A stretch of 64,000 nt of DNA, from positions 62,001-126,000 of the IMG/VR virus record IMGVR_UViG_3300026078_000017; one strand, given 5' to 3'. Of the stretch, positions 11,587 to 51,438 are shown piece after piece. The position numbers were made by a program, and so were the translations under genes. The stretch's first letter is position 1. Every line of letters begins with the position of its first letter. The notes below the pieces were generated by a model, which was given only the letters and a program-made list of their open reading frames with translations, searched no databases and was not told the DNA's origin.

Positions 11587-12237
11587 TTATTCTCCACCAA
11601 TCCCCATTCTTGGAGGATTATGGGAATATGGCTTTCTGTTGAGATTTTTCGAAACCTTTGCCATAACAGCCTTGGGTCCCTTTTGGTCAGAGTCATGACG
11701 ATCCATGTAAACCTCACCACCGCCAACCATGTTACGTCTAATAGAGTTTGTAGCCTTGTGTAAGCCCATCTTATCCAGAACGTTTTCCAGAATTTCTTCA
11801 ACGATTTCCCCAAGATAAGCTTGTGTTTGCTCTGACTCTGGCGTTGGAATGCCAACAAGGTGAGTTGTGATGGTTTCTGCTACATAACGAATCTTTGGTG
11901 GTTGAGCACCTGGCTTGTCTCCTTGCCAGAAGAAATCCCTGATTTGATCTCTGTGTTTTCCGTCATGAGTAACTGGACCGCTGGTTTCTCCGAAATTGTT
12001 AAAGTTCTCATCTGCGAGAGTACCGCCTCCATAAGGGGCAAGTAATGCTGCACCAGCAGAAACGCCATTAGCTTCTGAAACTTTCTTTTTGTCACCAGAC
12101 CACATAGTCTTGTGAGCTGGACCCATGTCCATTCCAAGGGGAGCACCACCAGTTGCACTAACTGCACCTGTTCCTACAGCGTTAAACTCGTCCAACTCTT
12201 GTTGAACCAGTTCCTCTATTAGTTGTTTAATCCCCAT
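11587..12237 (-). CDS. hypothetical protein with capsid-type leader
   Basis: MGIKQLIEELVQQELDE N-terminus; several internal [ILV]xE sites. Confidence 0.7.
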   Translation of the reverse strand: MGIKQLIEELVQQELDEFNAVGTGAVSATGGAPLGMDMGPAHKTMWSGDKKKVSEANGVSAGAALLAPYGGGTLADENFNNFGETSGPVTHDGKHRDQIRDFFWQGDKPGAQPPKIRYVAETITTHLVGIPTPESEQTQAYLGEIVEEILENVLDKMGLHKATNSIRRNMVGGGEVYMDRHDSDQKGPKAVMAKVSKNLNRKPYSHNPPRMGIGGE

Positions 12238-12859
12238 GTGTCATTCCTAGGTCGATACAGACGAGTCTGTTGTCTGGCGTAATACCCCAATGATCAAATC
12301 TGTCAATGTCGTCCATTCCAGCTTTTGTTAAATAGACGAACTTCCTGATAAGATCTTTTCCTCGTTTTGTAGGACGAACCTCATCGGCTTCTATGGGTTT
12401 CTTCTTTTTTTCGAATTCTTGAAATGCCTGAGCAGGGTCTTTTGGGGAGTTGTAGTTCTTCAGGAAGTCACCAAAGTGAATCAGCCAGTTTTCCGTAAGT
12501 CCGGTCGAACCAGTGAAGTCTTCATTTGTAGGCCATGTTTGTGCCCGTTCCACAATCATCCAGGCAAAATGTGGGTCATGGTCATAAATGACAGGACAGA
12601 AGTCCTTGCCAAAAGTCTCAAAGGCAGAGAACTCCATGGAACTTTGTTGAGCATCTGAGGCTATTTTGAGAACTTTGGTTGGAGTCAAGGCATAGGCAGT
12701 TCGTGCCATTCCATGCCCCAAAAGGACGAGTCCTGACTGTTTTGCATAGGCATTTCGTTCTTTATAGTTCCGAAGCTGCTTAAAATGCTCAAAGTCGAAG
12801 GATGCACCCTCGAAACTCTCCACAATTAAGGCTTCTAGGATTTCGCTTAGGAGTCCCAC
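12227..12859 (-). CDS. atypical protein-kinase-like protein (paralog 1)
   Basis: LLGHGMARTAY (Gly loop), KVLKIA (beta3 Lys), MEFSAFE (helix C Glu), DIDRFDHWG, IDLG (DFG-like). Confidence 0.7.
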   Translation of the reverse strand: MGLLSEILEALIVESFEGASFDFEHFKQLRNYKERNAYAKQSGLVLLGHGMARTAYALTPTKVLKIASDAQQSSMEFSAFETFGKDFCPVIYDHDPHFAWMIVERAQTWPTNEDFTGSTGLTENWLIHFGDFLKNYNSPKDPAQAFQEFEKKKKPIEADEVRPTKRGKDLIRKFVYLTKAGMDDIDRFDHWGITPDNRLVCIDLGMTHGD

Positions 12860-12867
12860 TCGGTTAA

Positions 12868-13542
12868 TTATACCGGCAAACCCTTGGAACGAAGAATTGC
12901 TTGCAACTTTTGCATGGAATCTTGTGGATTCTTGTGCAAAATGGCAATTCCGCCAGCGCTTTCAAACTTGGTCGTGTACTTGGTACGGTCATCGATCAAA
13001 ATCGAGTTAGGATTTGCGTACTTGTCCTTGTCCTGAGTACACACGAACTTGTCGAACATCCCAGGAAAATGGGAATCCATCCACTGTCGCTTTTCCTGCA
13101 TACAGCGTTCAATGTTGTTGTCTACAGGTGCCGTGAGAATACTTGGCTTACGACCAGTCATGGCTGCTGCCTGGGCAAGCATTTCCTTTGCTCCTGGCAT
13201 TTCTGGAAGATTGGCAAAGAAGCCCTCACGACCCGTCAGGGCGAACTTCTGTTCACGGTAGTGCTGCCATGCCTTCTTGAGAGCCTTGAGTCCAGGATCG
13301 GCTTGAGGACCCGCCAAACGCTTACGAAGCTCATCATCCGTGATGTGCATCAGGTCCGGGAAGTTTTTGAGCAATGCCATGTAGGTGTCACGTGCCTTTC
13401 CAGCACGTGGGTTTCCATCCAACACGCCTTGGTCGAAATCCGCCAGAACGCCATCCATGTCAAAGTAAATGACAGGCTCATTCAAGATGGACATTTCTGC
13501 CTCAACAATATTCTCGACCAAAATCTTTAATTCATCACTCAC
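12868..13542 (-). CDS. HAD-family 5'(3')-deoxyribonucleotidase
   Basis: IYFDMDGVLADF, ILTAP, EKRQW, ILIDDR. Confidence 0.88.
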   Translation of the reverse strand: MSDELKILVENIVEAEMSILNEPVIYFDMDGVLADFDQGVLDGNPRAGKARDTYMALLKNFPDLMHITDDELRKRLAGPQADPGLKALKKAWQHYREQKFALTGREGFFANLPEMPGAKEMLAQAAAMTGRKPSILTAPVDNNIERCMQEKRQWMDSHFPGMFDKFVCTQDKDKYANPNSILIDDRTKYTTKFESAGGIAILHKNPQDSMQKLQAILRSKGLPV

Positions 13543-14735
13543 AGAGCAAGTCTCCTAAAAAGTTCTGTTTCTCTACGTTCTTGTTCTTGTCCAAGCTCTT
13601 TACCAGAGAAACCCTGAGCCTGCAACTCAATTCCGGTTACTGAGTGTTCAAACTTGATAAATGCCTTCACCAAGTGGTCCTCAGGTTTTCCAACCATGTG
13701 GGAAAATTGGACCAAATCAGAATCTGACAACCGGGAGTTTTTGAAAAGCTTCTTTAATTTGTATGCATTCATCACAGAAAGTGACAAAAACATCGACAAA
13801 AATGACACTTGTGCCACTTCGTCCGCAGGGTATTTTAACTGATTGAGTTTGTTCATGAGAACCTTCCAAGGATTCTCTCTAAGCAAGTACCCAAGCATCA
13901 CAGGAATGTTTTTTGATTCCTTGAAGTCACGTGAGACAAGAAGTCCCGGAAAAATCTGTTCCCACAGATTGTACTCGGAAATCAGGTGAAAGAACTGAAC
14001 CACTGACTTGGCACTTTTGATGCCTTTCAAAAATTCATCCCTGATACGTTCGCCAGAAACTCCCTCAAGAGAGTTATTGGCCTTGATGGCTTGAGAAGTT
14101 GCGGGATCAAGTCCAGAACCAACTCGTGCAGCAAATCGAATTGCCCTGAGAATACGAAGTCGATCTTCATCGAATCGTTCTTCTGGTGAACCCACGGTAC
14201 GAATGACACCCTTTTCGATATCACCCATTCCACCAACATAGTCTACAATCTCTTGTTTCTCGATGTCGTAAAACAAGGCATTGATAGTCAAGTCACGACG
14301 TTGAACGTCCTGGTCGATACTGGTAAATGACACAGCATCTGGACGGCGTCCTTTTCCAATGTCCTGGCGGAAGGTGGCAATTTCGTACTCGTTTCCCTCG
14401 GGAGTGATAACTTTTACCACACCAAAGGACTTACCCACCTCCAAGATTTTGTAAGCAGGATTCTGTCTAAGAATCCCAACAACGTCATCCGGTTGAGCGT
14501 CTGTGGCAACGTCTAGGTCTTTTGGAGGCAGTCCCATGAGTGCATCACGAACAGACCCACCCACAAGGAAAAACTGTTTTCCGGCAGACTGAAACATCTT
14601 CGAAATCTGAAGAAGGTCTTCAGGCAGTGGAATATGAAATGACTTTCTTACCGGCTCAGCAGAAGACTCAGCAAGGATTTCATCAACATACTTGTTGACA
14701 AACTCAGACAGAAGGATTTCATGGGGTTTCTGCAT
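13539..14735 (-). CDS. cca: CCA-adding tRNA nucleotidyltransferase (class II; poly(A) polymerase family)
   Basis: LVGGSVRDALMG, KDLDVAT, RRDLTINAL, EDRLRILRAIRF, SGERIRDE. Confidence 0.9.
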   Translation of the reverse strand: MQKPHEILLSEFVNKYVDEILAESSAEPVRKSFHIPLPEDLLQISKMFQSAGKQFFLVGGSVRDALMGLPPKDLDVATDAQPDDVVGILRQNPAYKILEVGKSFGVVKVITPEGNEYEIATFRQDIGKGRRPDAVSFTSIDQDVQRRDLTINALFYDIEKQEIVDYVGGMGDIEKGVIRTVGSPEERFDEDRLRILRAIRFAARVGSGLDPATSQAIKANNSLEGVSGERIRDEFLKGIKSAKSVVQFFHLISEYNLWEQIFPGLLVSRDFKESKNIPVMLGYLLRENPWKVLMNKLNQLKYPADEVAQVSFLSMFLSLSVMNAYKLKKLFKNSRLSDSDLVQFSHMVGKPEDHLVKAFIKFEHSVTGIELQAQGFSGKELGQEQERRETELFRRLAL

Positions 14736-15552
14736 TTTCTTGCTTTACGAGATTTTTGAAGGTCCAACCAATGATTGCTAGGTCAAAGGCTACTCTGAAC
14801 TTAAGAGGCTTTGTTTGTGGTGTCTCAACTGTGGAAGTTTGTTCACATCCAAGTTCATAAACAAATGTTTCTGCTGTAGTTTTGTTGGCATCCTCAAGTT
14901 GCCACACACCCTTTTTCCTAGAGACTCCAACGGCTTCTTGAAGATTGTAAATAGCCCCTCTGTTCTTCTGATTGCGGAAGAGGTAAGGTTCATTGTCCTT
15001 TATAGTAGTATCCTCGTGAAAGTCAAGGAAAAACGTTGGATTGAACTTGATTATTTCCTTACGGATATCCGTGACGTACTTTGGAGGACGAACCTTGGCA
15101 AACTTAAATCTTGACTTGGTCTCATTTTTGCTTATCCAGACTGAGTTGAGGTTGATCTTGTTGTTCTCTTTACGCTGTTTGTTGTTCCAGGCGTCATGAC
15201 CAACAAGAGGAGAAATCATCAAGGAGAAGTCCTTGCTTATCAGGGCACCTTTTGGGGTATTTTCTAACCAGGTCAAAAGAGCAATTGGACCAGCACGTTC
15301 TTCTCCGTGAATACCTGCATTAAACAATACCTTTTGGGGTCCTTTACCCAAGAAGTACACAGATCTGCCAAATCTCATACGTTTAGCGCGAAACCCATGA
15401 ACCTTTGCTGCCTTGTCAAAGCGTTTCATGAAGCTTTCGGCAGACAAGTTGTTTATTTTGTACAGTTTTGGCAAAAAACCTTCAAGTTTTGCCACTTCTG
15501 TAGTAACAATTCTCTTTCTCCATGCAGATTTGGTTCGGGGAGTGATTGCCAT
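14719..15552 (-). CDS. M14-family Zn carboxypeptidase/desuccinylase-like protein
   Basis: AGIHGEERAG (HxxE), NLN, FLDFHE, VETP. Confidence 0.75.
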   Translation of the reverse strand: MAITPRTKSAWRKRIVTTEVAKLEGFLPKLYKINNLSAESFMKRFDKAAKVHGFRAKRMRFGRSVYFLGKGPQKVLFNAGIHGEERAGPIALLTWLENTPKGALISKDFSLMISPLVGHDAWNNKQRKENNKINLNSVWISKNETKSRFKFAKVRPPKYVTDIRKEIIKFNPTFFLDFHEDTTIKDNEPYLFRNQKNRGAIYNLQEAVGVSRKKGVWQLEDANKTTAETFVYELGCEQTSTVETPQTKPLKFRVAFDLAIIGWTFKNLVKQENAETP

Positions 15553-15703: not shown

Positions 15704-18190
15704 TCATCCACACTTGCTGTGTCCGCAGTCTTGGCAGGACACACAACCCTCTTGGTATATCAGTTTAATAGAACCGCAGTTTGGACACTTCTTCTCAGAA
15801 GCCTTGGTGCCGTCCTTGATATAGTGCTTTAGAACTCTGGACATTGCCCTGGAGAAAGAGAACAGGTCGTCTTCCTTTTCTGAACCCTTCTGGAGCTGTT
15901 CCACGATAAACTGAACAGGTGACCCATGTCTCAAGGCAAGAGAAATAGTTCTGGTAAATGCAGAGTGAGTTGTGTTGTTGAAGGACTGAGCAATGTCCTT
16001 TACGATCGTCTCGTCCTCTGGACCCTTTTCGTAGTCATAGTGGAAGTCATAACGTGCCACAGGATTTTCCTGACCATTATGTTTGACGATCTTTCCTGTC
16101 TTCACTCTCTTTGGCATTGAGATGTGTTTTGACAAACCACCAAGAACCTCATATGGTTTTCCATCATACAAGCCAACGAACACCGTCCATTTTTCGCCAT
16201 TCACCGTGAGACTCATAACGTCACATGGAAGTTCCTTAGGTCTCTTTGGAGCATGACGATCCGTAAACTCTTGCTTGTCGTCTTTCTTAGCAGAAGATGA
16301 GGAAGTCTCAGTAACGAGCACACCCGTACGACAACCATCACGATACACAGTCACACCCTTACATCCAGATTCCCATCCGGTCATGTAAATGTCCTTGATG
16401 ACATCAACGGTTGTGTCACTTGGAACGTTTGTTGTGTTCGAAATGCTATGGCAAATCCACTTCTGTGCAGCAGCCTGAACTTTTACCTTGGCAACCCAGT
16501 CAATGTCATTTGCACGTGACTTGAAGTATGGAGAGTTTTCTACGCCAGACTTTCCAGAGACTTCCATCCACTTTGCATATTGGTGATGATAGACCTCATA
16601 CTCTTGCCACTTGTCACCCATGTCATCAATGAAGTCAACTCTGGCTTCCTTGTCATTTGGGTTGATTTTCTTGCGGCGCTTGTAAACGACCTCGAATGCT
16701 GGCTCAATGCCAGAGGTTGTTTGTGTGAGCATCGAAACAGAACCTGCTGGAGCTGTTGTCGTAAGTGCCACATTTCTTCTGCCAAACTTTTTCCACTTTG
16801 CAGCAAGGTCTTTGTCCTGAGAAAAAATCCTCTGCAAGAATGGATGATCTTTTTCTAGCTTGTAGTCGAACGCAGGGAAACATCCGCGCTCTTCTGCCAT
16901 GTCGACAGTTGCCTGATAAGCTCCCATAGCCAACAAACCATAAACCTTGTCGGTCATTTCGATAGACTCTGGTGAGCCATAACGCATGCCAAGAGCTGCG
17001 AACATGTCACCAATAGCCGTTAAACCAAGACCTGTGCGTCTACCACGTGTGCAAGCTTGCTTAATCTTGTTCCACAGGTTGCGTTCAATTGCCTTGACGT
17101 CTTCTGGCTCAGGGTCGCTTTCAATCTTTGCAAGGATTTTATCAACACACTCAAGCTCAAGGTCAACAAGGTCATCCATGAGTCTCTGAGCGACAATCAC
17201 ACACTCCTTGAAGTCTTTTTCCAAGAACTCTGCATTTTTCTTAAATGGGTTCTTCACGAAGGACAGAGCATTTACCAAAAGGAGTCTGCATGAGTCATAA
17301 GGACTGAGAACAATCTCACCACATGGATTTGTGGAAGTCGACTTGAACTCTGCGTAACACTCGGTTGGAGTCTCTCTCTTGACGGTGTCCCAAAATAACA
17401 ATCCAGGTTCTGCGGAAGCGTGTGCACCCTCAATAATCTTGTCCCAAAGTTCACGAGCACTTGTCTTCTGAGAAATGATTGGAGTTTTTGAGTCTACAGG
17501 AAAACGAAGTTCGAAGTCTTCATTGTTTTTCACTGCCGTCATGAACTCATCAGACAGACGAATAGAAATGTTGGCGCCCGTTACCTTCTTGAGATCTCTT
17601 TTGATCTTCACGAAGGTTTCAATCTCGGGATGATGAACCGAAATTGTGAGCATCAAGGCTCCTCTGCGACCACCCTGAGCAACCTCACGACAGGTGTTGG
17701 AGAATCTCTCCATGAACACACCAATACCATCTGTGGTTTTTGCAGCGTTGGAAGTAGCAAGACCTCTTGGGCGAATGGTGGACACGTCAAAGCCAACACC
17801 GCCACGTCTCTTCATCAACTGAGCTTCTTCCTGGTCTGTCTTGAGAATGCCACCATAAGAGTCATATGGGCTCTCAATAACGAAACAGTTGCTCAAGGAG
17901 ACTGTCTGATATGGATTACCAATACCAGACATAGGAGAACCCTGAGGGATTATGTACTCAAAGTTCTTCAACCACTTATAGATCTCTGCTTCTGAAAGTG
18001 CGTTCGGATATTTCTTTTCAATCCTGGCGAACTCCTTTGCAAGTCTCTTGTGCATGTCATCTGGAGTTGGCTCCAAAATGTCACCAAGTGGTTGACTTGT
18101 GAGTGCATACTTGCCAAGAAAGACCTCTGCCGCTAACTTGTCTCCATTGAAATATTCGGTTGACTTTTTTAATGCTGACGTGTAATCCAT
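15704..18190 (-). CDS. nrdJ: adenosylcobalamin-dependent (class II) ribonucleotide reductase
   Basis: SLSNCFV, GGVGFD, TNPCGE, TTTAPAGS, C-terminal CPNCG...CQDCGHSKC Zn ribbon; no adjacent nrdB. Confidence 0.93.
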   Translation of the reverse strand: MDYTSALKKSTEYFNGDKLAAEVFLGKYALTSQPLGDILEPTPDDMHKRLAKEFARIEKKYPNALSEAEIYKWLKNFEYIIPQGSPMSGIGNPYQTVSLSNCFVIESPYDSYGGILKTDQEEAQLMKRRGGVGFDVSTIRPRGLATSNAAKTTDGIGVFMERFSNTCREVAQGGRRGALMLTISVHHPEIETFVKIKRDLKKVTGANISIRLSDEFMTAVKNNEDFELRFPVDSKTPIISQKTSARELWDKIIEGAHASAEPGLLFWDTVKRETPTECYAEFKSTSTNPCGEIVLSPYDSCRLLLVNALSFVKNPFKKNAEFLEKDFKECVIVAQRLMDDLVDLELECVDKILAKIESDPEPEDVKAIERNLWNKIKQACTRGRRTGLGLTAIGDMFAALGMRYGSPESIEMTDKVYGLLAMGAYQATVDMAEERGCFPAFDYKLEKDHPFLQRIFSQDKDLAAKWKKFGRRNVALTTTAPAGSVSMLTQTTSGIEPAFEVVYKRRKKINPNDKEARVDFIDDMGDKWQEYEVYHHQYAKWMEVSGKSGVENSPYFKSRANDIDWVAKVKVQAAAQKWICHSISNTTNVPSDTTVDVIKDIYMTGWESGCKGVTVYRDGCRTGVLVTETSSSSAKKDDKQEFTDRHAPKRPKELPCDVMSLTVNGEKWTVFVGLYDGKPYEVLGGLSKHISMPKRVKTGKIVKHNGQENPVARYDFHYDYEKGPEDETIVKDIAQSFNNTTHSAFTRTISLALRHGSPVQFIVEQLQKGSEKEDDLFSFSRAMSRVLKHYIKDGTKASEKKCPNCGSIKLIYQEGCVSCQDCGHSKCG

Positions 18191-22396: not shown

Positions 22397-22398
22397 AA

Positions 22399-39711: not shown

Positions 39712-40014
39712 TTACAACTTAGACATGTCTAGCATGTCTTCTGTAGAAGGTGTTGGTTGTTCTGGTTTTGGGTTATGGCTTTTGTGAAGTTCAAGGGTTG
39801 CAACAGCGGATTTAAGAAGAGCAAGTGCTTTTTCAGGATCTCCACCGGCTCCTGCCATGGCGGTCATAATCAAGCTCCAGCGTCCTTTAAGTTTGCCTTG
39901 AGCCTGAAGGAGTTTCATTTTCTCCCAATCAATACCGAACATTCCGGCTTCCTGAAGCTTTTTGTCAACTGCCTCTCTAATGAGAGACCTAAGTTCTGTA
40001 AGGGAAATTTCCAT
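39712..40014 (-). CDS. hypothetical protein with capsid-type leader
   Basis: MEISLTELRSLIREAVDKKLQE N-terminus. Confidence 0.7.
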   Translation of the reverse strand: MEISLTELRSLIREAVDKKLQEAGMFGIDWEKMKLLQAQGKLKGRWSLIMTAMAGAGGDPEKALALLKSAVATLELHKSHNPKPEQPTPSTEDMLDMSKL

Positions 40015-41555: not shown

Positions 41556-42241
41556 ACTCTTGCTCCTGCGAAACCAGGCGTTGCGGGTTCATCTTCTGCA
41601 TCTACAACTCTTGAACCTACTACTCTTGGAGTTGCTTCTGGTCTATAACCTGCCAAAGCCTCAGCATCCTGTTCAAGGTTGTAACCCTGAGTACCTGCCT
41701 CTTTTGCCATAGCAGAAAGATATACTTCAATTCTCTTCTTCTCTTCCATCAAGGCATTATAGAACATGCCTACGACCTGAAGAACCTCACGCTCATACTT
41801 GCCTCTGGATTCCTGAGGAAGCGAGTCAAGCAAGTTGTAAAACTTACCAAAAAGGTCAAAAACGGAGTTTTGGAGAGTGTTGATTGCTTGTGAACTTCTA
41901 ATGGCATCTGCCTTGAAACTTGTTACTTGCTTTCTGGCATTTGCAATCGTCTTGTCCAACAAACCCTGGACCTGTTTAGGATCCGAGGTTCTGTGCTGAG
42001 GATCAACAAGGACGTTCTTGTTGTAGAAGTCCTTAGCTTTCATGTCGGCACCTAAATACTTGTTCTTGACCCAGCTCTTGGCTCTGTCAATCCAGTCAGC
42101 CTCATTGAGGTCCAACATTTCATTGATAAGAACAACTCTGTTTTCAAGCATGATTCTTTGAACCTGCTTGTTCTCAGAAAGTGCCTTTTTGACTGACTCG
42201 TTTATGGTTGCCTTAAGCAAGGCGGGTGTAACTTTGCTCAT
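41552..42241 (-). CDS. hypothetical protein with capsid-type leader
   Basis: MSKVTPALLKATINESVKKALSE...LINEMLDLNE. Confidence 0.7.
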   Translation of the reverse strand: MSKVTPALLKATINESVKKALSENKQVQRIMLENRVVLINEMLDLNEADWIDRAKSWVKNKYLGADMKAKDFYNKNVLVDPQHRTSDPKQVQGLLDKTIANARKQVTSFKADAIRSSQAINTLQNSVFDLFGKFYNLLDSLPQESRGKYEREVLQVVGMFYNALMEEKKRIEVYLSAMAKEAGTQGYNLEQDAEALAGYRPEATPRVVGSRVVDAEDEPATPGFAGARV

Positions 42242-42252: not shown

Positions 42253-45252
42253 TCAAGTAATGTTGAAGTTGCCTTGGTTCGTAAGTACGAATGTAAGGTC
42301 CAAGAACTCAAGGGAACGAACTGGGACAATGAAAATCTTACCACGAATGGTCTTGTTCTCAATATCCACCTGTGTGGTTGTGGTTGTGTCAATCTTCACA
42401 AGGAAGGACTCAACACCCTGCTGATCTTGAACCTTCTTCAAGATAGGCTGGCAAAGTTGCTGGAATCTTGCAAGGGTGGATGCACGGTTTGGTTCAAACA
42501 AGAATCTGTTTGCAACCTTACGGATTTGACGACGAAGGCTAAGAAGAAGACGACGTACGTTGACTCTTTCAAGCGCACTTGGCGTTGCAAGAAGCGTCTT
42601 CTGACCCCAAACAACCGTACCCTCGGAACCTGGGAAGGCGACGATTGGGTTAATGTTGACTTGGTAAAGGTCATCCATGTTTCCACGGGAAAGTTTCACA
42701 GCAGCCTCTTGAGTTGTGTCAAGAGCACCACGAGAGAAACCTGCTGGAGCAAACCATGGGAAGGCAACAGCGTCGTTCTTGGAGAATGCACCAAGGACAG
42801 CAACAGAAGGAGCAACCTCACGAACTACGTTCGAAAGCTGATCTCTCAAAATCACGTTAGGGAAGTATGCAGCACCGAAGGAGCTGTTAAGACCACGACC
42901 TGTGAAGTTGTTGACAGTATTTCTTACAGAAATGATTTGGTCTTGTCCACCAACCATTGTGTGAGCCTGCGAGTCAAGTTCTTCAATGTCCATCAAATAA
43001 ATGGCATCGAAACGATTTTCTGCGACTGCAAGAGCCTGGTCAGTAAGGTATCTGTGACGGATACCTGGAAGTGTCATAATTTGAATGTCAAGCTCAGATG
43101 TGTCGTTCATGATGGACAAGGAACGCTCATAAGCCTTAACGGTTGGACCAGAAGACAACAAACGGTTACCGTTGTTGAGTTCTTGAACAACTGCTGTGTT
43201 GCTCATGTACTGACACTCACGATCGAAGATTCTTACACCGTCAAATCCGCCTTCAACAAAGAAGGAGAACTTGGCTACCTGGCGAACCGTTGGGTCTGCA
43301 AGGTCATCAACTGTCAAAGCACGGGTAAGACCAACCGTGTCGGTTGTGATGCCGCCAGCACGAACGTAGGTCCAGTTCTGGAGGTTGTTCATGTCTGGGG
43401 AGTTGCTTGCCGCAATGTAAGGTACCTTGATTTTCTCAAGGGAGAACAAGTTGTTGTTAAATCTGTCAGCATCCAAGATGCCGTTGCTTGCTGTGTCAGC
43501 CACGCCCTCATTGTCTCTTACAACAACGCTCTGCCAGTCTGTGTGGAAGTTTGGCAAATATTTTGCAAACGAACAAACGGAAGTGTCTGGAACAAGCGAT
43601 GCATTCGACTCAGAGATGGAAATAACCTTTTCGAACTGAACACCCCAATAAAGAGCACGGTCACCAATTTGGTTACCAGATGCACCACGGGAGAGGTTTC
43701 TACGCATTGGAACTGGTGGTTGTGCAAGGTTGAACCATGGGTTCGAAGCAACCAAGTTCGTTGCGTCTGCATAACCGCCCATTGGGCCTGTACCAGAAAC
43801 CATCAAGTGTTGATTTCCTCTGAAGCCTACTGGAAGTGCTGTTGGGTCAACGTTTGCGTCATTTACGCCAGAAGCAACTTCAACACGAATGTACTTGGAG
43901 TTATTTGGGTAGTCGCCATCAACAACAAGCTTCTGTTCGCCATTTGCGGCTTCGAAGTTATAGAATGTGTGGTAGTTACCAATAACACGTGCAACGTAGT
44001 TGTCAGCATTTGGATCAAGGGACAAACCTCTCCACTGCTCAAGAACTGCACGGCTCTTGTCTGTGTCGGTTCCATCACGAACAAGCAAGTCGAACTTACC
44101 ATAAAGGTAGGTGTCGCTGAGGCTTGGCGAGATATTTTCGATGGAGATTTTTACTTTACCAGTTGTGTAAGCACCGTCATCCAAGGTGTGAACCTTGAAC
44201 AAGTTTTGTGGCTTGCCACCAAAGAGCTGGGATGTTACCCATGGGCTCTTTGCTGTTCTAAATCTGTCTTCGAAGTTTTCAAAGTTAGGAGCTACGGTTG
44301 AACCAGAGTTTCTTGTCTGGGAACCTGTGAGCAAGAATGCTGCTCTTTCAAGACCGGCCGAACTGGAGACGATTGCACCAGCGCCTGTTACGACTGCAAC
44401 TGATGGGTAAATGTCCCAGGAGTTGTAGAGAACGTAACCAGCCTGTTCAAGGCGGAATGGGTCTTTGTTGAAAATGCTACCGAAGTAGTTTGGTGCTGTT
44501 GGGTCAAAGGATGCCGTAACAACGTTTGGATAAGAGAGGTCCAAACCACGATGACCATTAAGGAGCATAACGAACTCTTGTTTGGAGTTCGCAAGATTTA
44601 CAGAACCTGTCTGACCACCACGGATGTTTGCACCAGCGGCTGCAAGAGTTGTGGATGGAGCTGAGTTTGTACCAACCGAGTCTGAAAGTGTCAAAACGAC
44701 ACCGGATGCTGCCATGATCATGCCACGGACAACTGGAAGACCAACACCAACTCTACCTGCCTCAGAGAACCATGTCGAGCCATTGGACTCGGACATGAAA
44801 GCACCGATCATGTACATTCTGCCAAGAGGACCGACATCGGTACCCGAGGATGTAACTGCATAAGCATTGTAGCCAAGAGCACCAGAAAGGACGCTTTGTG
44901 GCTGTTGATCACCGACTACGAAACCTGCGTTTGTAACCTTGCCCTTGTTGTTTCCAGCCGTTGTACGTGGGTCACCAGTACCAATACCAAGAACACGAAG
45001 GAAGGTTGCTGCCTGAGCATTTCTAAGCCACTCAGATACTGCTAAAGGACCATTTACTGCGCCGTCTGTTGTCTTACCGAACACAACAATAAAGTCTTGT
45101 GTCGTTGGAACAGTCATTGGCACGAATGCTGGTCCTTTCTGAGCAGAACCAACAACACCAGCAGGGATACCCACTGGTACAAGTGCTGTCGGACCAGTCA
45201 AGTTTATTGTTCTTGCTGATACGCCCGCTGATTTGAAGTTTATCTCAGTCAT
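42253..45252 (-). CDS. contractile tail sheath protein (copy 2)
   Basis: GVVGSAQKGPAFVP, PWFAPAGFSRG, INPIVAFP, VWGQKTL, RVNVRRLL, FEPN. Confidence 0.93.
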   Translation of the reverse strand: MTEINFKSAGVSARTINLTGPTALVPVGIPAGVVGSAQKGPAFVPMTVPTTQDFIVVFGKTTDGAVNGPLAVSEWLRNAQAATFLRVLGIGTGDPRTTAGNNKGKVTNAGFVVGDQQPQSVLSGALGYNAYAVTSSGTDVGPLGRMYMIGAFMSESNGSTWFSEAGRVGVGLPVVRGMIMAASGVVLTLSDSVGTNSAPSTTLAAAGANIRGGQTGSVNLANSKQEFVMLLNGHRGLDLSYPNVVTASFDPTAPNYFGSIFNKDPFRLEQAGYVLYNSWDIYPSVAVVTGAGAIVSSSAGLERAAFLLTGSQTRNSGSTVAPNFENFEDRFRTAKSPWVTSQLFGGKPQNLFKVHTLDDGAYTTGKVKISIENISPSLSDTYLYGKFDLLVRDGTDTDKSRAVLEQWRGLSLDPNADNYVARVIGNYHTFYNFEAANGEQKLVVDGDYPNNSKYIRVEVASGVNDANVDPTALPVGFRGNQHLMVSGTGPMGGYADATNLVASNPWFNLAQPPVPMRRNLSRGASGNQIGDRALYWGVQFEKVISISESNASLVPDTSVCSFAKYLPNFHTDWQSVVVRDNEGVADTASNGILDADRFNNNLFSLEKIKVPYIAASNSPDMNNLQNWTYVRAGGITTDTVGLTRALTVDDLADPTVRQVAKFSFFVEGGFDGVRIFDRECQYMSNTAVVQELNNGNRLLSSGPTVKAYERSLSIMNDTSELDIQIMTLPGIRHRYLTDQALAVAENRFDAIYLMDIEELDSQAHTMVGGQDQIISVRNTVNNFTGRGLNSSFGAAYFPNVILRDQLSNVVREVAPSVAVLGAFSKNDAVAFPWFAPAGFSRGALDTTQEAAVKLSRGNMDDLYQVNINPIVAFPGSEGTVVWGQKTLLATPSALERVNVRRLLLSLRRQIRKVANRFLFEPNRASTLARFQQLCQPILKKVQDQQGVESFLVKIDTTTTTQVDIENKTIRGKIFIVPVRSLEFLDLTFVLTNQGNFNIT

Positions 45253-45310: not shown

Positions 45311-48300
45311 TCAGACGAACTGAATACCGCTATTTGTGATAATGAAATCGATAGCAATGAACTCAGCAGCGCGAACTGGAACCACCTTAATGGAGGCATT
45401 CATTCTGTTTGCCAAAACATCTTGGGAGGTGTTGTTACGTTCGTCACAGATGATTTCGAATCTCTCGATACCATCGCGGATTTGAACAGTTGACAAAATA
45501 GGCTTAACCAAGTCAACGAATCTCTGGCGAAGTGCCGGAGTAAGCTGTTCGAAGATAAGGCTATTACCAGCATTTACGATTTGTTGCTTAATGCTGATAA
45601 TCATTCTGTTCACGTTGATGCTCTGAAGGGCAGTTCCTGCCTGTTCAAGCGTCTGTTGGGAGAAGATTACAAATCCCTCATTTGGGAACTTGGTGATTGG
45701 GTTAATTCTAACTGCGTAAAGTCTTTCACGCTCAGGCTGGTTGACCTTGCTTGAGGTGTTGGTTACGAAGTCAAGGGCTGCACGATTGAAGCCGGCAGGC
45801 GCAAACCATGGGTAAGCTACCTTGTCGTTAAATCCGATTGCTGCAAGAGCAGCAACAGAAGCTGGAACCGTTACCTTGCGGTTGTTGTTGACAGTGTCTT
45901 CCAAAACGATATTTGGGAAATATGCAGCAACGAAGTTGTTGTCAACTGCACGAGACTCAAACATGTCTGCCGTTCTGTTATTGGAAGCGTATCTTGTGGT
46001 GTCACCATCGAAAATACGAATGGAGTTGGAGTCGTAGTAAGGAACGTCCATCAAGTACTCAGCCAAACCGTAGTTTTGTACTGCTGTACCAATGTAGTCC
46101 GTTACAAGAGGGTCTCTCTGACCTGGAACTGCCAAAATGTTGATGTTGCTTACGAATGGATCCGTAATAAGAGCACCTGCCACACGGTAAGATGCAACAG
46201 CGTTGTTCTTTCTGGATGTACCCGACTGATTTACTGCGAAACCGGTTGGGATATACGCAGAATTTGCGCCACCGCCAGTTTCGGCAGATGTACCCTTGTC
46301 GGTCATGCGTGCCTGCTCTTTGTCAAGGATGTTCAAACCATCAAAACCACCATAAAGAACTGTTGTGAACTTGGAGTAGTTTGAGAAACGGTTGAATGTC
46401 GTAGCGTCACCGTTCTGCAACAATGTTGCAAGAGTAATACGGTTCATGTACGTGTCGTTGATCTTGTAGTCACTTGGGTTTGGCTGACCATTTCTGATAT
46501 AAGCCGCTTCCTTCATGTGTTGGTCTGCGGATGCAGTCAAGTCTGTGATTGCAGCGTTACCAAAGGCAACTCTTGCAAGAGAGAACTTGTTATTGTTGAA
46601 TGCGTCTGCCTGAGAGCCCGTTACAAGCACGTCAAGCTTCTTGATACCAACGAACTGGGTGTATGCACCAACAAGGTGATTGATTTCGCCATTGACGTTG
46701 GTGTTCAACACGTCATTGTTATTTCTGGTAACCTTAACACCCCAGTAAAGGCGTGCGTCAGCAATTTCAGTTGGACCTGGTGTACCGATTGGACCGATTG
46801 CAGAAGTGATTGCACCACGAGTAACCTTAAATCTGAAAGGAAGTGGTGGAACGATTGCGCCAAGCAATCTTGCTTGTGTGGAACCAACCGTACCCGAGGC
46901 TGCCAATCTCGTAAGAGCTGGAATCGAGGAAGTTGTGTCCGTAAGAAGTGGGTTTGTGTCGATTGTGTTTACGCCACGGTAACCGAATGGAAGGCATTTT
47001 GCTGGAATGACCTTGTCTTCAACACCCTTGGACATGTTCACACGGATGTAGTTCGAACGGCTTGGGTACTTACCAGTCTTTACCAAACGACGGTCGTCTT
47101 CATTTTCAACGTCAAAGTTGAAGAAGACCTTTGTGTTACCAATGACACGACCAACATAGTTGTCCGAGTCTGGGTTAAGGTTGCAGTTGTTGAACTGTTC
47201 CAAAATCTGGATGTTTACGTCATCGTCATCAAACGAGCGAACCAACACTGCGAACGTTCCGTAAGGATTTTTTGGATCTGTGGATGCCTGTACGTTTGCA
47301 ACAGATGCCTTGATTTTGCTATTGCTGTATGCGCCATCATCCAAGCTTTCAATCTGGAAGAGGTCGTACTCTGCAAGACCGAAAGGCTGTGAAATGATCA
47401 TTGGGGTTGCTGGGGTTGTGAATCTTGTGTCGAAACGACCAAAGGCATTTCTGAATACAAGAGAAGTGTCACCAGACGTCTGAGACGTGTTGTCAGAACC
47501 GGATGCAATGCACACGGAAACAGAGCTTGTAACAACCGAAGCAATTTCGTTATCTACAGCGAAATCAGCATAAAGCAAGTGCTTTTCGGCACCAAACTTG
47601 ATTGGATCACGGTTGAAGACCTTAGCGAAATAATCCTTGGAACTTGGGTCAAAGGAAGCTGTGAAAATCTTGATGCCAGTGTTGCCATCGGCTGTACCGA
47701 AAGAACTACCGGCAGAACTCGAAATAACCACCTTAATCTTACCATTGGTATCTGGGGTTGCAAGGTCGTCAGTAAGATTTGAGAAAGACTGGTTGGTGTC
47801 GAGAATCATAATTCTCGTGTCGCTTGCAGCAAACAAAATACCACGAACCAAGTTTACTTCATTAGAAGAACCTGTCGTGAAGAAGGAACTGTTGTCAGAG
47901 AACATTGGGAAACCGGCGACTTCTGTGCCAGTTACAACGTGTCTTGCTGTGATGAACTGAACCGAGTGATTGTGACGATTGTCAACGCCAGGGTTTACCT
48001 GGGAACCACTAAGCTTGAAACCTGCGTTGAGTACAGTACCCTTTGTACGGGTTGCATCCATGTCTGAAGATGTTTCGTTTGCACCTGCACCCAAAGTACG
48101 GATGAAGGTAAGAGCAAACTTGTTCTTCAAAAAGAGATTAACACCGTATGGTGCTGGTAATTTGGAATCAAGCGTACCGAATTTCGTGTTGAAATCTGCG
48201 AAAGAACCAACTGTGGTTGGAACGAAAGCGGGACCTTTTTGGGAGGTTCCGATTACGCCAGCCGGGATACCAGTTGGACTCTGTACTTCGACAGTAAGAT

Positions 48301-48349
48301 CGATTTCTCTGTCGAAAAATCCGGGTGCTTTAAAGATTTGTTCTGCCAT
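45311..48349 (-). CDS. contractile tail sheath protein (copy 1)
   Basis: FKAPGFFDREIDLT, GVIGTSQKGPAFVP, PWFAPAGFNRA, INPITKFP, FEQL. Confidence 0.92.
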   Translation of the reverse strand: MAEQIFKAPGFFDREIDLTVEVQSPTGIPAGVIGTSQKGPAFVPTTVGSFADFNTKFGTLDSKLPAPYGVNLFLKNKFALTFIRTLGAGANETSSDMDATRTKGTVLNAGFKLSGSQVNPGVDNRHNHSVQFITARHVVTGTEVAGFPMFSDNSSFFTTGSSNEVNLVRGILFAASDTRIMILDTNQSFSNLTDDLATPDTNGKIKVVISSSAGSSFGTADGNTGIKIFTASFDPSSKDYFAKVFNRDPIKFGAEKHLLYADFAVDNEIASVVTSSVSVCIASGSDNTSQTSGDTSLVFRNAFGRFDTRFTTPATPMIISQPFGLAEYDLFQIESLDDGAYSNSKIKASVANVQASTDPKNPYGTFAVLVRSFDDDDVNIQILEQFNNCNLNPDSDNYVGRVIGNTKVFFNFDVENEDDRRLVKTGKYPSRSNYIRVNMSKGVEDKVIPAKCLPFGYRGVNTIDTNPLLTDTTSSIPALTRLAASGTVGSTQARLLGAIVPPLPFRFKVTRGAITSAIGPIGTPGPTEIADARLYWGVKVTRNNNDVLNTNVNGEINHLVGAYTQFVGIKKLDVLVTGSQADAFNNNKFSLARVAFGNAAITDLTASADQHMKEAAYIRNGQPNPSDYKINDTYMNRITLATLLQNGDATTFNRFSNYSKFTTVLYGGFDGLNILDKEQARMTDKGTSAETGGGANSAYIPTGFAVNQSGTSRKNNAVASYRVAGALITDPFVSNINILAVPGQRDPLVTDYIGTAVQNYGLAEYLMDVPYYDSNSIRIFDGDTTRYASNNRTADMFESRAVDNNFVAAYFPNIVLEDTVNNNRKVTVPASVAALAAIGFNDKVAYPWFAPAGFNRAALDFVTNTSSKVNQPERERLYAVRINPITKFPNEGFVIFSQQTLEQAGTALQSINVNRMIISIKQQIVNAGNSLIFEQLTPALRQRFVDLVKPILSTVQIRDGIERFEIICDERNNTSQDVLANRMNASIKVVPVRAAEFIAIDFIITNSGIQFV

Positions 48350-48378
48350 GCGCTTCCTCGTAGGATTTAAATATGATG

Positions 48379-48415
48379 AGGGGGCTACCCAACCTTTGGT
48401 TAATTAGAGCCCCTT
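48379..48415. other. intergenic stem-loop (terminator or processing site?) between two TANTTA motifs
   Basis: GGGGCT (48381-86) pairs with AGCCCC (48408-13); inner AACC-ttt-GGTT. Confidence 0.4.
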
Positions 48416-48435
48416 AAAGTGATTCCCAAATATTC

Positions 48436-49686
48436 TCACTTATCCTCCGACAATAGGAATTCTTGCAAAGTCGCTATATCTGAGGCCGAATACACAGTTT
48501 CTCCCTTTCGTTGATTTCGTTCAATCTTTTTGATATATTTTGTACACTTTTTGCCCGTAATTGGGTCAACAAAGGTCTTTTTGAATAAAAACTGTTGATT
48601 TGTTGTCGGAGCTTGTTTGGTAGCTGCTTCCTGATTTATGTCGCTCAGCAAGAATTTGCTGTCGTTGGGGTTGACAAGAGGAGGAACCGTCAAATCGCGG
48701 GGACTTAGAATGTCTCCTGTTGGGGCTTCATTGATTTCAAAGGAAATGGTTGGAGCACTTAGGTAACGTCTAATAGGCACTGGGTTAGCTGGTCCATTTG
48801 GGGCCAAAACGAATCCCTTTACCGTCATGGTAAAACTATAACGGATGATTCTTTCATTATTGGAAAAATCATCAAAATTGTCCTCCGAAGAAAGGGTGTC
48901 GTCTACATAACCCATAAACCAGTATCCCTTGTCGGTTCCAAGGCGGAACATTTTGCCCTGAGGTAAGAAGGAAGACATGAATGTCTCAATAAGGTAGTTC
49001 ATGTGCTGGTGATAGGAGGTCCAAAAGGTGATCTCATAGGTTGCCGTAAAGAACTGAGGTTGAGGGATTGTAAAAATCTCAAAGATGTTCTGTCCTAGGT
49101 GTGGAGACAACAAAGCTCCATTAAGAACATCATGGTCATTTGCTAGACCCTCAATTTTCTTTGTATCTGTGGATCTTGGTAGATCTGGGATATTTTTGAA
49201 GGCATATTTGTTCAAAAGACCCTGAAAGTCCTGATCTTCTGGAGCTAAACGACGCTTTATGACAAGATCTCCAGTAAACTGGTTCATACCACGAGCTGTG
49301 ATGTCATCATCCGTCTGTTGAATGCCAGTCCTACGGATAGAGATGGCAGGAAGTAACAAAACCTGATTTTTATCTCTTGGTGGGCGAAGCTTCTTGGCAA
49401 GAGCGAACTTTTCACCAGTTGCAAAGATTACTTGTGGCTTTTTAAGATAAATCGCCTCTTGTCCGCCACCATAGGTTTGAACAGAAAACTTGATAGTTTC
49501 ATTGAACAAGGCATGAAGTCCCTTGTCACAGTCCTCAATGCCACACGGAGGAATGGTGTAGGTCTCAGATGCAGCTCCACCGCCATCAGCATAACCGCTA
49601 GGTAGATTACCTAACGTTTCTCCTGGCTTAGGTTCAGGAATGTTATGACGTGTTATGTTAGTATCACGTGGTGGTGAAATCGGCAT
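48436..49686 (-). CDS. tail completion / sheath stabiliser (T4 gp15-like)
   Basis: LPAISIRRTGI, YEITFWT..HQHMNYLIE, RIIRYSFTMTVKG; between neck and sheath genes. Confidence 0.6.
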   Translation of the reverse strand: MPISPPRDTNITRHNIPEPKPGETLGNLPSGYADGGGAASETYTIPPCGIEDCDKGLHALFNETIKFSVQTYGGGQEAIYLKKPQVIFATGEKFALAKKLRPPRDKNQVLLLPAISIRRTGIQQTDDDITARGMNQFTGDLVIKRRLAPEDQDFQGLLNKYAFKNIPDLPRSTDTKKIEGLANDHDVLNGALLSPHLGQNIFEIFTIPQPQFFTATYEITFWTSYHQHMNYLIETFMSSFLPQGKMFRLGTDKGYWFMGYVDDTLSSEDNFDDFSNNERIIRYSFTMTVKGFVLAPNGPANPVPIRRYLSAPTISFEINEAPTGDILSPRDLTVPPLVNPNDSKFLLSDINQEAATKQAPTTNQQFLFKKTFVDPITGKKCTKYIKKIERNQRKGETVYSASDIATLQEFLLSEDK

Positions 49687-49704
49687 ACCTATAAATAGGT
49701 ACGC

Positions 49705-50631
49705 TTAGGCTCTTCGTGCTGGACGTGCCGTTTTCACTGAATCTTGTGGAGGTCTTGGAGCTGCTGGTTCTTGTGAGGCAGGCTGCTGTTGAGACTGTTG
49801 TCCAACCAAGCCCTGAGGTTCTTCTGGAGTCTGTGATTGACCTTCTGGTGGAGCTGTGTGATCCATGGCATGACCTGAAGGGGTGTAGTACTTACCAGAA
49901 ACCTCACGAGTAAATCCATAGTCAAGCAAGACAACTCGACCATCTGCGGTGTATCCGTAGTGACCAATGGTATTGTCATCGGCTGCATCAAATCTAGCAA
50001 CGTCACCCACAGACAAGCTTTCGCTGACCAACATCATCATGGTCTTAACGAAGGGACTTTGAGCAGCTTTCTGATATTGGTCTACTCTACGTTTTGTAAT
50101 CAAGTAGATTTGTTTACTTGCGTGTTCTGCTTCTATTTCTTCAAGTCTCTCCTGCCACTTGGCAAGGGTTGCCTTAAGGTAGGCATCTGGGTTGCTTTGA
50201 TCTTCAGCTTCATTCCATCCGCGAATGACATCCACGTAAGTAGTAAATGACAAACCTGTGAGTTGTTGAAACTGGTCTGCGGACCTGAGAGGGTTTGCAA
50301 TTTCTGACACAAGCCAGGAGAAGGCAGTTTTGTCCCAGTCAAAGATAGCAGTGACTACACCCTTTGTTCTTGGGTCTCTAAAAATGTCATACTCTGCACG
50401 GTTCTGTGCAAGACCAGCTTTATTGATGGCGATCTTGAGAACCTTGCCACCACTGAGAGCAAATACCGCTCTAGAAGAACCATAACCCATTTCTGGAAGG
50501 TTCTGTTTGGCATAGTCAATTCTTAGATTTGGAGAACCAAGGGTTTTGAACTGAGCAAAGTTGAACTTACGAAGAACTTCCGAAATGGCTTCTTCTGTGA
50601 GTTGTTCTACTAGTGTCTTTAAAATACTCAT
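49705..50631 (-). CDS. atypical protein-kinase-like protein (paralog 2)
   Basis: MGYGSSRAVF, KVLKIA, QNRAE, WLVSE, GHYGYTADG, LLDYG. Confidence 0.72.
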   Translation of the reverse strand: MSILKTLVEQLTEEAISEVLRKFNFAQFKTLGSPNLRIDYAKQNLPEMGYGSSRAVFALSGGKVLKIAINKAGLAQNRAEYDIFRDPRTKGVVTAIFDWDKTAFSWLVSEIANPLRSADQFQQLTGLSFTTYVDVIRGWNEAEDQSNPDAYLKATLAKWQERLEEIEAEHASKQIYLITKRRVDQYQKAAQSPFVKTMMMLVSESLSVGDVARFDAADDNTIGHYGYTADGRVVLLDYGFTREVSGKYYTPSGHAMDHTAPPEGQSQTPEEPQGLVGQQSQQQPASQEPAAPRPPQDSVKTARPARRA

Positions 50632-50637
50632 ACGTCC

Positions 50638-51438
50638 TCAGTAATGCTTTCTCATGACTTCCATGGTTGCACCGAAGTCGAGAATTCTAATCTGTCCATC
50701 TGCCGTTCTACCAAAATGATTTGGGAACAAGTCATGTGGATTTAACTTGTGGGTATACTTCATGTTGTCAACATCAATCCAAAACTTGTGAGACAGTGGG
50801 TCATTAAGCAAGTCTTGTAGTTGATGATATTTCTGTGTGTATTTTTGCAGAGTACTTTGGGCATGAGCAAGATCCCACTGAGAAGTGTTTGGATCTGCCT
50901 TGGCTTTATTCAACTTGAGTTCCCAGTTTCTGATGTCGATATCGTAAGTGTCAAGCCAACCCTCAACAGTTTCTGGAGTTTCCAATATTACAGTCATCCA
51001 AAACTTTGGATCTATGTGGGTGTATTTCTCAAACTCTTCCCACTGAATTTCCTTGACAAGTTCTGAAATGAGCCACTTATAGTCAGGACTATAGTCAAAG
51101 ATTCTTGTAACCAAGGAGTTATCCTTGTTGTGAGTGAAAATCTCAAGCTCAGCTTGATTTTGAGAAATGCCTGCTGGATTCAGAGCAACCTTAAGAACCT
51201 TGCTTGAACTCAAGGCAAATGCCACACGAGAAGAACCTCTACCAAGTTCTGGAAGAAACTTCTTGGCATAGACAATCTCTGGGTGTTCCTTGCCAAGCCA
51301 AGCAAAGTCTTCTTCTTCGGATCTGTTACTAGGACGAACGTCTCCAGCAGAAATTTGCTTAAAGGTATTCAAGTTGAAGCCTCTGAAGGCTTCAGCAATT
51401 AACTCGTGAATCAGGTTTTCTAAAATACTGACTTTCAT
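50638..51438 (-). CDS. atypical protein-kinase-like protein (paralog 3)
   Basis: LGRGSSRVAF, KVLKVA, QNQAE, WLISE, DLFPNHFGRTADG, ILDFG. Confidence 0.75.
   Translation of the reverse strand: MKVSILENLIHELIAEAFRGFNLNTFKQISAGDVRPSNRSEEEDFAWLGKEHPEIVYAKKFLPELGRGSSRVAFALSSSKVLKVALNPAGISQNQAELEIFTHNKDNSLVTRIFDYSPDYKWLISELVKEIQWEEFEKYTHIDPKFWMTVILETPETVEGWLDTYDIDIRNWELKLNKAKADPNTSQWDLAHAQSTLQKYTQKYHQLQDLLNDPLSHKFWIDVDNMKYTHKLNPHDLFPNHFGRTADGQIRILDFGATMEVMRKHY

Follow-up and report, generated by a model that had tools for sequence, protein, structure and literature searches.

The window analysed here, a stretch of 64,000 nucleotides that covers positions 62001-126000 of the 320,479-bp IMG/VR virus record IMGVR_UViG_3300026078_000017 (estimated completeness 81%), comes from a T4-superfamily jumbo myovirus and encodes three paralogous proteins, K1, K2 and K3, which very probably adopt the protein kinase-like (PKL) fold in a minimal form. 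K2 and K3 lie side by side in the structural block of the genome, with a gp13-type neck gene on one side and two tail-sheath genes on the other, and all three proteins begin with a short leader of the kind found on proteins loaded into the T4 head. I give an even chance to the reading in which K1-K3 are competent minimal PKL phosphotransferases, K2 and K3 being loaded into the head via the leader, injected, and acting on host targets. The family to which they belong, phrog_4301, is already catalogued, although loosely annotated; what is new is a clade that carries a His in the catalytic loop and a leader at the N-terminus, and that forms tandem, fast-evolving arrays in the neck slot.

Should this reading be right, K1-K3 would be the first phage protein kinases to be delivered by the virion. 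Phage kinases have of late emerged as broad weapons against defence, with T7K as the example (PMC13645617); the known cases are early genes which require expression in the infected cell. Four marks characterise the clade, namely the T4-type head-loading leader, a late structural operon, a variable copy number, and a divergence about twice that of the neighbouring genes. If packaged, the proteins would add phosphorylation to what T4 does with its 'injected internal proteins' (IPI, Alt), and minimal kinases that nature has diversified and that are constitutively active would become available for study as a compact set. The His-for-Asn catalytic loop would be a variant of kinase chemistry.

Three paralogs with a minimal kinase fold

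An earlier note, made on the letters of this DNA, had listed the three genes as paralogs; the open reading frames are indeed there (coordinates in Table 1), and by sequence comparison they are true paralogs, K2 and K3 being alignable over their full length (BLASTP E 1e-35, 31% identity), K1 and K2 at E 1e-17, and K1 and K3 at E 3e-11. A hidden Markov model (HMM) of the family retrieves K1-K3 from the 320-kb genome at E 1e-43 to 1e-77, and no further match better than E 0.05 among the called open reading frames and the six-frame translations. The motifs which the note reported are all present, some details of its patterns being in need of correction: KVLK[IV]A, H[WYF]GxTxD and [IL]D[LYF]G are exact in the three proteins; the Gly-loops read LGHGMAR in K1, LGRGSSR in K3 and MGYGSSR in K2, with Met and not Leu in first position; the hinges are WMIVE in K1, WLISE in K3 and WLVSE in K2, with Val and not Ile; and the segment F-x-[FL]-x-x-F-K has Leu for the second Phe in K3 (F-N-L). 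The beta3 Lys is K65 in K1, K66 in K2 and K83 in K3, the helix-C Glu within Q-[NS]-x-x-E is E76, E80 and E97, and the DFG-equivalents are I-D-L-G, L-D-Y-G and L-D-F-G, respectively. A lack of the helix-C Glu in K1, suggested by the small alignments A1 and A2, proved to be a misalignment once the larger A4 and A5 were considered.

AlphaFold2 models were obtained for K3 from a 13-sequence alignment and for K1 from a 128-sequence alignment, with a model confidence (pLDDT) of 88.6 and 89.5, respectively. According to the models, the leader of about 15 residues would be followed by two short helices (F-x-F-x-x-F-K and Y-A-K), by a five-stranded N-lobe holding the G-x-G-S-S-R loop, the putative ATP-anchoring Lys (V-L-K) and the helix-C Glu (Q-N-x-x-E), by the hinge W-x-x-S-E, and then by a variable helical hairpin, the catalytic loop G-D-[LIV]-x(3-4)-H-[WFY]-G and the predicted metal-binding L-D-Y-G. 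In Foldseek searches of the PDB, the check proposed at the outset for the kinase fold, each listed row for both models is PKL or PKL-related; the best is in either case APH(2''), an aminoglycoside phosphotransferase (APH; E ~1e-4, probability 1.0), followed by YtaA, MEK1, CDK6, choline kinase, Mps1, PknB, PRPK and Lpg2603, and the K1 model has 82 matches at E<=1e-3. VIA, a search independent of Foldseek, returns for K1 only PKL or SAICAR-synthase folds (50 of the 50 listed rows, 130-154 residues aligned), RIO1/2, Bud32, ArkI, OspG and NleH among them; for K3 (Z <=7.9) the rows are mostly kinases, mixed with coiled-coil matches to the long helical hairpin. In BFVD, the matches comprise RaK2 ORF356 (TM ~0.6) and T7-like 'protein kinase' entries. 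A sequence profile search of the PDB stayed short of significance (E 0.16 at best); in its alignments, G-D-I-x-x-x-H-F-G and L-D-Y-G of the family fall on H-x-D-L-K-P-x-N and D-F-G in TTK and PAK.

The residues expected of a kinase are under strong constraint. Across 139 representatives of the family (K3 numbering), G68, R71, K83, Q93, E97, G243, D254 and G256 are invariant, D236 is kept in 135/139 and H241 in 131/139; the family-specific R71 and Q93-N94 are as conserved as the kinase-critical positions. The HRD loop is replaced by D(x)nH with variable spacing, as had been noticed before: the catalytic Asp, preceded mostly by Gly (95/139), is separated from the His by 5 residues in K1, 13 in K2 and 4 in K3, the spacing being 4 or 5 in 127/139 representatives and 16 at most. 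The canonical Asn at +5 from the Asp is thus absent, and His stands at its position in the 131 representatives, K1-K3 included. Since distant members hold Asn in the same columns (D-x4-N in Munch gp046 and RaK2 ORF356, D-x5-N in XacN1 ORF170), the His is regarded as the equivalent of the canonical Asn. Judging from these residues, K1-K3 are likely to be catalytically competent; the catalytic Asp would act as the base, and the His would fill the metal-ligand place of the Asn.

The chain stops some 10 residues past the DFG motif, the median distance from D-x-G across the representatives being 14, and structural alignments extend no further than the DFG of the target proteins; there is therefore no activation segment and no alphaF-alphaI core, so that the architecture is that of a minimal kinase. 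Of the eukaryotic-type features of PF00069, the activation segment, the APE motif and the alphaF-alphaI core are accordingly missing from K1-K3, and an enzyme with no activation segment should be constitutively 'on'. OspG/NleH and ArkI/Bud32/RIO share this truncated PKL architecture, likewise with no activation segment or alphaF-alphaI (Z 6.4-7.4 over ~110-140 residues), yet they show no detectable sequence kinship to K1-K3, keep the catalytic Asn and bear other helical inserts. The segment from hinge to catalytic Asp, a helical hairpin of 56-147 residues, is the least conserved region (top-residue frequency 0.20, as against 0.61 in the N-lobe and 0.62 in the catalytic region), and for this reason a natural candidate for substrate recognition.

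A few points speak against a kinase. Z values up to 8.3, those of K1, are middling, and the tool warns that such values may reflect a common arrangement; the PKL case for K1 is therefore built on the uniform list and the residue mapping and not on the Z values. Pfam gives zero matches for K1-K3 or for 13 relatives, even at E 10, and the structure matched best is that of an antibiotic kinase rather than of a protein kinase. Besides, the His-for-Asn exchange and the variable Asp-His spacing, with the 13 residues of K2 as the case in point, could reduce or change catalysis. Taken to the extreme, K1-K3 might be pseudokinases, or structural components of neck or head that retain only the fold: the genes of the neck slot are flanked by neck and tail-terminator-position genes, the proteins lack the canonical Asn, and the top VIA row for K1 is the pseudokinase domain of RNase L. 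Such proteins would not be expected to retain Lys, Glu, catalytic Asp and DFG Asp at (near-)invariance in the 139 representatives, together with the His in 131, which makes this alternative very improbable.

Family phrog_4301 and the T7 kinase

The phrog_4301 HMM matches K1 at E 7.8e-10, K2 at 1.8e-13 and K3 at 4.9e-13, and carries the label 'unknown function'; all 13 members of alignment A2 match it, and matches to kinase PHROGs are only marginal. In an exhaustive profile search, the representative clusters number 3,491 at E<=1e-3, 2,163 at <=1e-10 and 435 at <=1e-30; the neighbours in the ESM Atlas consist of viral clusters named 'hypothetical protein', with Phage_T7_kinase as a partial label in one. 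The family is large, phage-restricted and distinct from that of T7 gp0.7. Its cultured members are found in jumbo phages of the RaK2-like, 121Q-like and XacN1 types; in GenBank some of them, e.g. gp046 of Salmonella phage Munch, already bear the name 'putative protein kinase', though only in a few records, and no experimental work on the family was found in the literature consulted.

Munch gp046, Klebsiella phage RaK2 ORF356 and Xanthomonas phage XacN1 ORF170 match phrog_4301 at E 1e-26 to 8e-40, and Munch gp046 is a secure homolog (hhalign against A2: probability 98.8, E 1e-16). These proteins have G-x-G-S-S-R, V-[LI]-K, Q-N-x-x-E and D-[YA]-G in common with K1-K3, and they are also short (~195-215 residues), ending soon past the DFG-like motif. 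In contrast to K1-K3, each is encoded by a single gene copy, in the company of small genes of early type or of metabolic genes, has no acidic [LIV]-x-E leader and retains the Asn; what sets the K1-K3 clade apart from them is the His, the leader, the greater length of the helical hairpin and the tandem arrangement in the neck module.

The representatives P0012, P0013 and P0014 are 640-920 residues long, with 3-8 matched stretches each; they are either fused kinase copies or tandem genes merged in gene calling, possibly through stop-codon recoding. Another observation concerns the leaderless member P0011 (L025, 8688-9794, minus strand), which adjoins a DUF444 (PF04285) gene; DUF444 is the YeaH/YhbH-type partner in PrkA kinase operons.

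The kinship with T7 gp0.7 that had been brought into play for the three kinases does not hold: no phrog_2828 match was obtained at E<=1, hhalign of A2 against gp0.7 gave E 0.33, and membership of that family was rejected. Along the same line, BLASTP of Munch gp046 against T7 gp0.7 gives nothing, and Munch holds a phrog_2828 gene and a phrog_4301 gene separately. Both T7 gp0.7 (T7K) and K1-K3 are phage-restricted atypical PKL kinases, and the T7-like 'protein kinase' entries of BFVD are among the nearest annotated viral matches of K1 (structural E ~1e-7). T7K is a promiscuous kinase that disarms defences, and its homologs have D-P-V for D-F-G plus a shut-off domain (PMC13645617). A C-terminal shut-off/DNA-binding domain is part of T7K itself, an early protein synthesised in the infected cell. 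In K1-K3 the motif reads D-[YFL]-G, no further domain is attached, and K2/K3 belong to a late structural operon.

Copy number and divergence in the neck slot

The placement of two copies inside a neck/tail operon, as originally described, stands. The slot occupied by K2 and K3 is bordered upstream by a conserved 229-residue gene of the structural module, which has no family match, and downstream by a conserved 416-residue gene with a weak, sub-threshold T4-gp15_tss match (E 0.032); from their positions, the two would correspond to T4 gp14 and gp15, an assignment which for the former is positional only. Spacing within the slot is tight, with an overlap of 4 nucleotides upstream and then gaps of 6 and 18 nucleotides. 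Scans for sigma-70 promoters and terminators around both kinase loci stayed at chance level, and for this reason the operon structure relies solely on gene spacing; of the T4 late-promoter word there is a single instance, and it is on the wrong strand.

In comparison with loci of five related phage contigs (labelled L), the slot is variable: it holds two kinase copies in the window, three each in L006/L007, L027 and L028, and four in L021/L022. When the window is compared with L006, identity is 80-90% in the flanking genes and 39-44% in the best kinase pairs, which supports the word 'diversified' in the earlier note. The four copies of L021 are 43-46% identical among themselves, above their identity to the copies of other phages, and are therefore ascribed to lineage-specific duplication. 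Genes in conflict would be expected to change in copy number and to diverge fast while the structural genes around them are conserved, as is seen here; stoichiometric parts would not, which further argues against a structural role. K2 ends in a tail of ~60 residues (~248-308), Pro/Gln-rich and of low complexity, with a basic patch at its end; K1 and K3 have no such tail, and some orthologs have shorter Gly/acidic tails that finish in Trp.

N-terminal leader and possible delivery in the virion

All three proteins open with an amphipathic helix of 14-18 residues, which ends L-I-V-E in K1, A-I-S-E in K2 and L-I-A-E in K3. Its description as a capsid-type leader was apt: the ending has the form [LIV]-x-E, as in the T4 capsid-targeting sequence and in the capsid protein of this phage, the N-terminus of which ends I-A-E followed by Gly (L-A-E and Gly in an ortholog). 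In T4 the prohead protease gp21 cuts after [LI]-x-E. At the level of sequence, two marks of prohead-core cargo are present here, an [LI]-x-E leader and a gp21-type protease encoded in the genome; the protease gene adjoins a 792-residue scaffold-like gene with an [LI]-x-E density of 2.65 per 100 residues, the proteome having 1.03. T4 IPII/IPIII begin with 10 residues ending F-I-A-E and then Ala, the targeting sequence by which cargo enters the T4 prohead core, just as the K3 leader ends L-I-A-E and then Ala. Removal of small N-terminal peptides by gp21 from IPI-III and Alt is documented in T4 (PMC9958956, PMC3012670), and the internal proteins of T4 resemble the leader-bearing set of this phage in being diverse, fast-evolving and non-essential-looking. 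They differ in that none of them is a kinase and that the ip genes lie outside the neck operon; also, the leader of K1-K3 is longer than the T4 capsid-targeting sequence.

The leader is shared beyond the kinases. An HMM was built from 61 leaders of foreign kinases, those of the window being excluded, and among its top seven matches in this genome are five non-kinase N-termini at 8.0-11.5 bits (Table 1); none of 1641 internal tiles reaches 8 bits, the best having 7.6. The enrichment at N-termini is real. One of the five proteins, of 288 residues, has a C-terminal Arr-ms ADP-ribosyltransferase domain and may by analogy be the counterpart of T4 Alt, an ADP-ribosyltransferase that is packaged and gp21-processed (PMC9958956). 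The Arr-ms domain is of the rifampin type, and the orthologs in L027 and L028 were flagged likewise. In the models the leader helix has a pLDDT of 66-73, the core having 82-98 in nearly all 10-residue blocks. Members with a basic or absent N-terminus (L025, L030, L031, Munch, RaK2, XacN1) occur singly, among genes that are not structural.

From these elements, a course of events can be proposed. K2 and K3 would be made late, alongside neck and tail proteins; the leader would carry them into the prohead core, where the gp21-type protease of the phage would cut it off at [LIV]-x-E; and the mature kinases, ejected with the DNA, could phosphorylate host targets ahead of any phage gene expression. 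OspG and NleH are, in the same way, pre-made when delivered into the target cell. The 2-4 copies and the fast divergence of the array would then suggest that the phage is in an arms race with targets in the host, plausibly ones involved in defence or takeover. Head loading and injection is the most economical reading of the combined leader evidence, and virion delivery of K1-K3, so far as sequence goes, is plausible, its chances being about balanced.

Other observations pull the opposite way. Glu five residues ahead of the conserved Phe, with [LIV] two residues earlier, occurs in 74/139 representatives, so that the register of the leader is fixed relative to the kinase core across many phages, and the leader could simply be the structural N-terminal helix of the domain. 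As for the leader HMM, one of 504 reversed N-termini scores 10.4 bits (the next 7.4), and its statistics, resting on a 16-residue motif, are modest. The packaging of a CCA-adding enzyme or of a nucleotidase would be unusual, and the leader may have another role. The fixed register and the presence of the leader on enzymes of housekeeping type are the main reasons for caution about head loading. Lastly, the phage is uncultured.

These observations feed an alternative in which the kinases are active but remain unpackaged, K2 and K3 working late in the cytoplasm of the producing cell, e.g. on phage assembly proteins or late host targets, with the N-terminal helix as an integral part of the fold or an element of oligomerisation. 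A register conserved in so many representatives is what a domain element would show, the CCA-adding enzyme and the nucleotidase are not obvious cargo, and K1 is located outside the structural block. The occurrence of the motif on non-homologous proteins argues, though, against an element that belongs purely to the kinase domain; the leader ends in a gp21-type cleavage motif, like the N-terminus of the capsid protein and the T4 capsid-targeting sequence; the leaderless relatives are precisely those among early or metabolic genes, and a kinase made only late gains most by carriage into the next cell. On balance, the unpackaged alternative is rather unlikely, albeit the strongest competitor of head loading.

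Head loading could also be part of a broader scheme, in which this T4-like jumbo lineage would load a whole set of enzymes via the shared leader (2-4 kinases, the Arr-type protein, possibly the CCA-adding enzyme and the nucleotidase), the neck-slot array being an arms-race cassette that would modify host targets of defence or takeover prior to any phage transcription; this extension is tentative and I would not count on it. The papers on XacN1 and RaK2 do not name the leaderless relatives among the virion proteins, which is uninformative for the leader-bearing clade. A search of the literature on virion-packaged phage kinases found nothing relevant, their absence being not thereby proven, and protein kinases are not discussed in a comparative review of jumbo phages.

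A second type of amphipathic leader, [ST]-x-x-[EQ]-L-x-x-[LM]-[IV]-x-E-[AT]-V, occurs in five consecutive small genes outside the window (G000:C1:11504-14042, plus strand). N-termini resembling it are found in the window at 39712-40014, 40578-41555 and 41552-42241, and in a 159-residue gene between scaffold and protease (genome 126424-126903). Proteins with this second leader may be prohead-core or internal proteins.

Protein or other substrates

Protein substrates seem more likely than small molecules or RNA. Independently of packaging, the substrates might be small molecules, as for APH and choline kinases, nucleotides, or the 2'-OH of RNA/tRNA, as for ArkI. Such an alternative finds some ground in the aminoglycoside 2''-phosphotransferases at the top of the Foldseek list, which share with K1-K3 a helical hairpin between hinge and catalytic loop, in the ArkI RNA kinases at Z 6.1-7.1, and in the company of K1, whose operon also encodes a CCA-adding enzyme as well as a 5'-nucleotidase; likewise, the gene of a Thg1-type tRNA enzyme lies 3.6 kb from K3. 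Yet the APH Pfam family is unmatched even at E 10, and of the features of the APH/choline-kinase family PF01636 neither the HMM match, nor the Brenner motif H-x-D-x4-N, with its H-x-D and its Asn, nor the C-terminal substrate-binding helices of APH and choline kinases are found in K1-K3, the helices being missing because the chain ends after DFG. Furthermore, the scores of protein kinases and of minimal effector kinases are just as good, and the nearest functionally named viral matches in structure are protein kinases of T7 type. Non-protein substrates are thus rather improbable. An anti-defence function, drawn from the parallel with T7K, is speculation.

Genomic setting

K1 sits outside the structural block, in an operon with the order AstE-like gene, CCA-adding enzyme, 5'-nucleotidase, K1 and a 216-residue protein, with a ribonucleotide reductase further upstream. 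Pfam/PHROG matches begin at residues ~41-56 of the CCA-adding enzyme and ~16-24 of the deoxyribonucleotidase; the leader on such housekeeping enzymes was unexpected.

The capsid protein is only ~45% identical to those of its closest cultured relatives, and members of the kinase family are absent from the phages with the closest capsid protein, namely Flavobacterium phage immuto, Microcystis phage Mel-JY01 and the uncultured LR756508. A search of cultured phages at the DNA level with the kinase locus gave no match. The window also encodes a tape-measure-like gene and a baseplate hub gene.

Table 1. Kinase genes, their parts and other features, in window coordinates unless given as genome positions
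Feature	Position	Strand	Remarks
K1, 210 aa	12227..12859	-	smallest paralog; operon with nucleotide and tRNA enzymes
K1 leader	12818-12859		aa 1-14
K1 Gly-loop	12701-12718
K1 KVLKIA	12659-12676
K1 Q-S-x-x-E	12632-12646
K1 hinge	12548-12562
K1 catalytic loop	12272-12310		D184..H190
K1 IDLG	12245-12256
K2, 308 aa	49705..50631	-	neck-slot kinase; 13-residue insert between catalytic Asp210 and His224
K2 leader	50578-50631		aa 1-18
K2 Gly-loop	50470-50487
K2 KVLKIA	50428-50445
K2 QNRAE	50392-50406
K2 catalytic loop	49942-50004
K2 LDYG	49915-49926
K2 tail	49705-49890	-
K3, 266 aa	50638..51438	-	neck-slot kinase; modelled representative
K3 leader	51391-51438		aa 1-16, ending LIAE
K3 Gly-loop	51226-51243
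K3 KVLKVA	51184-51201
K3 QNQAE	51148-51162
K3 hinge	51061-51075
K3 variable helical hairpin			aa ~129-230
K3 catalytic loop	50698-50733		D236..H241
K3 LDFG	50671-50682
416-aa conserved gene	48436..49686	-	T4 gp15 position; downstream border of the slot
229-aa conserved structural-module gene	51435..52124	-	T4 gp14 position; stop overlaps K3 start by 4 nt; upstream border of the slot
gp13-type neck protein	52389..53657	-	ortholog 81% identical, carries PF26809 Phage_T4_gp13; own adaptor PHROG match weak
Two tandem tail-sheath paralogs, ~1000 aa each	42253-45252 and 45311-48349	-	directly downstream of the kinase slot
gp23-type major capsid protein	59539..61455	-	phrog_138 E 7e-74
gp21-type prohead protease	genome 127011-127439		Peptidase_S77 PF03420, 93.3 bits; just past the right edge of the window
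288-aa protein, C-terminal Arr-ms ADP-ribosyltransferase	55859..56725	-	leader HMM match; PF12120, 26.2 bits (cut-off 25)
100-aa protein	39712-40014		leader HMM match
205-aa protein	56725-57342		leader HMM match
216-aa protein, unknown function	11587..12237	-	leader HMM match; start overlaps K1 stop by 11 nt
CCA-adding tRNA nucleotidyltransferase	13539..14735	-	leader HMM match; ~45-aa N-terminal extension with leader; two genes upstream of K1
5'(3')-deoxyribonucleotidase (NT5C/HAD)	12868..13542	-	immediately upstream of K1; leader-like N-terminus, weaker score
AstE/AspA-like gene (succinylglutamate desuccinylase/aspartoacylase)	14719-15552	-	upstream of K1 operon
Ribonucleotide reductase with TSCPD domain	15704-18190	-	upstream of K1 operon
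Thg1-type tRNA-His guanylyltransferase	55068-55817	-	inside head/neck structural block
224-aa open reading frame	58765-59439	-	adjoins capsid gene

The two tail-sheath paralogs are 31-32% identical to each other, and each is 82-86% identical to its counterpart in L006; a sheath gene in duplicate is unusual. The ortholog of the Thg1-type tRNA-His guanylyltransferase carries PF04446 (phmmer E 2e-99). The 224-residue open reading frame next to the capsid gene looks by eye like a GIY-YIG homing endonuclease, and PF01541 is present in the L027 gene that occupies the corresponding position.

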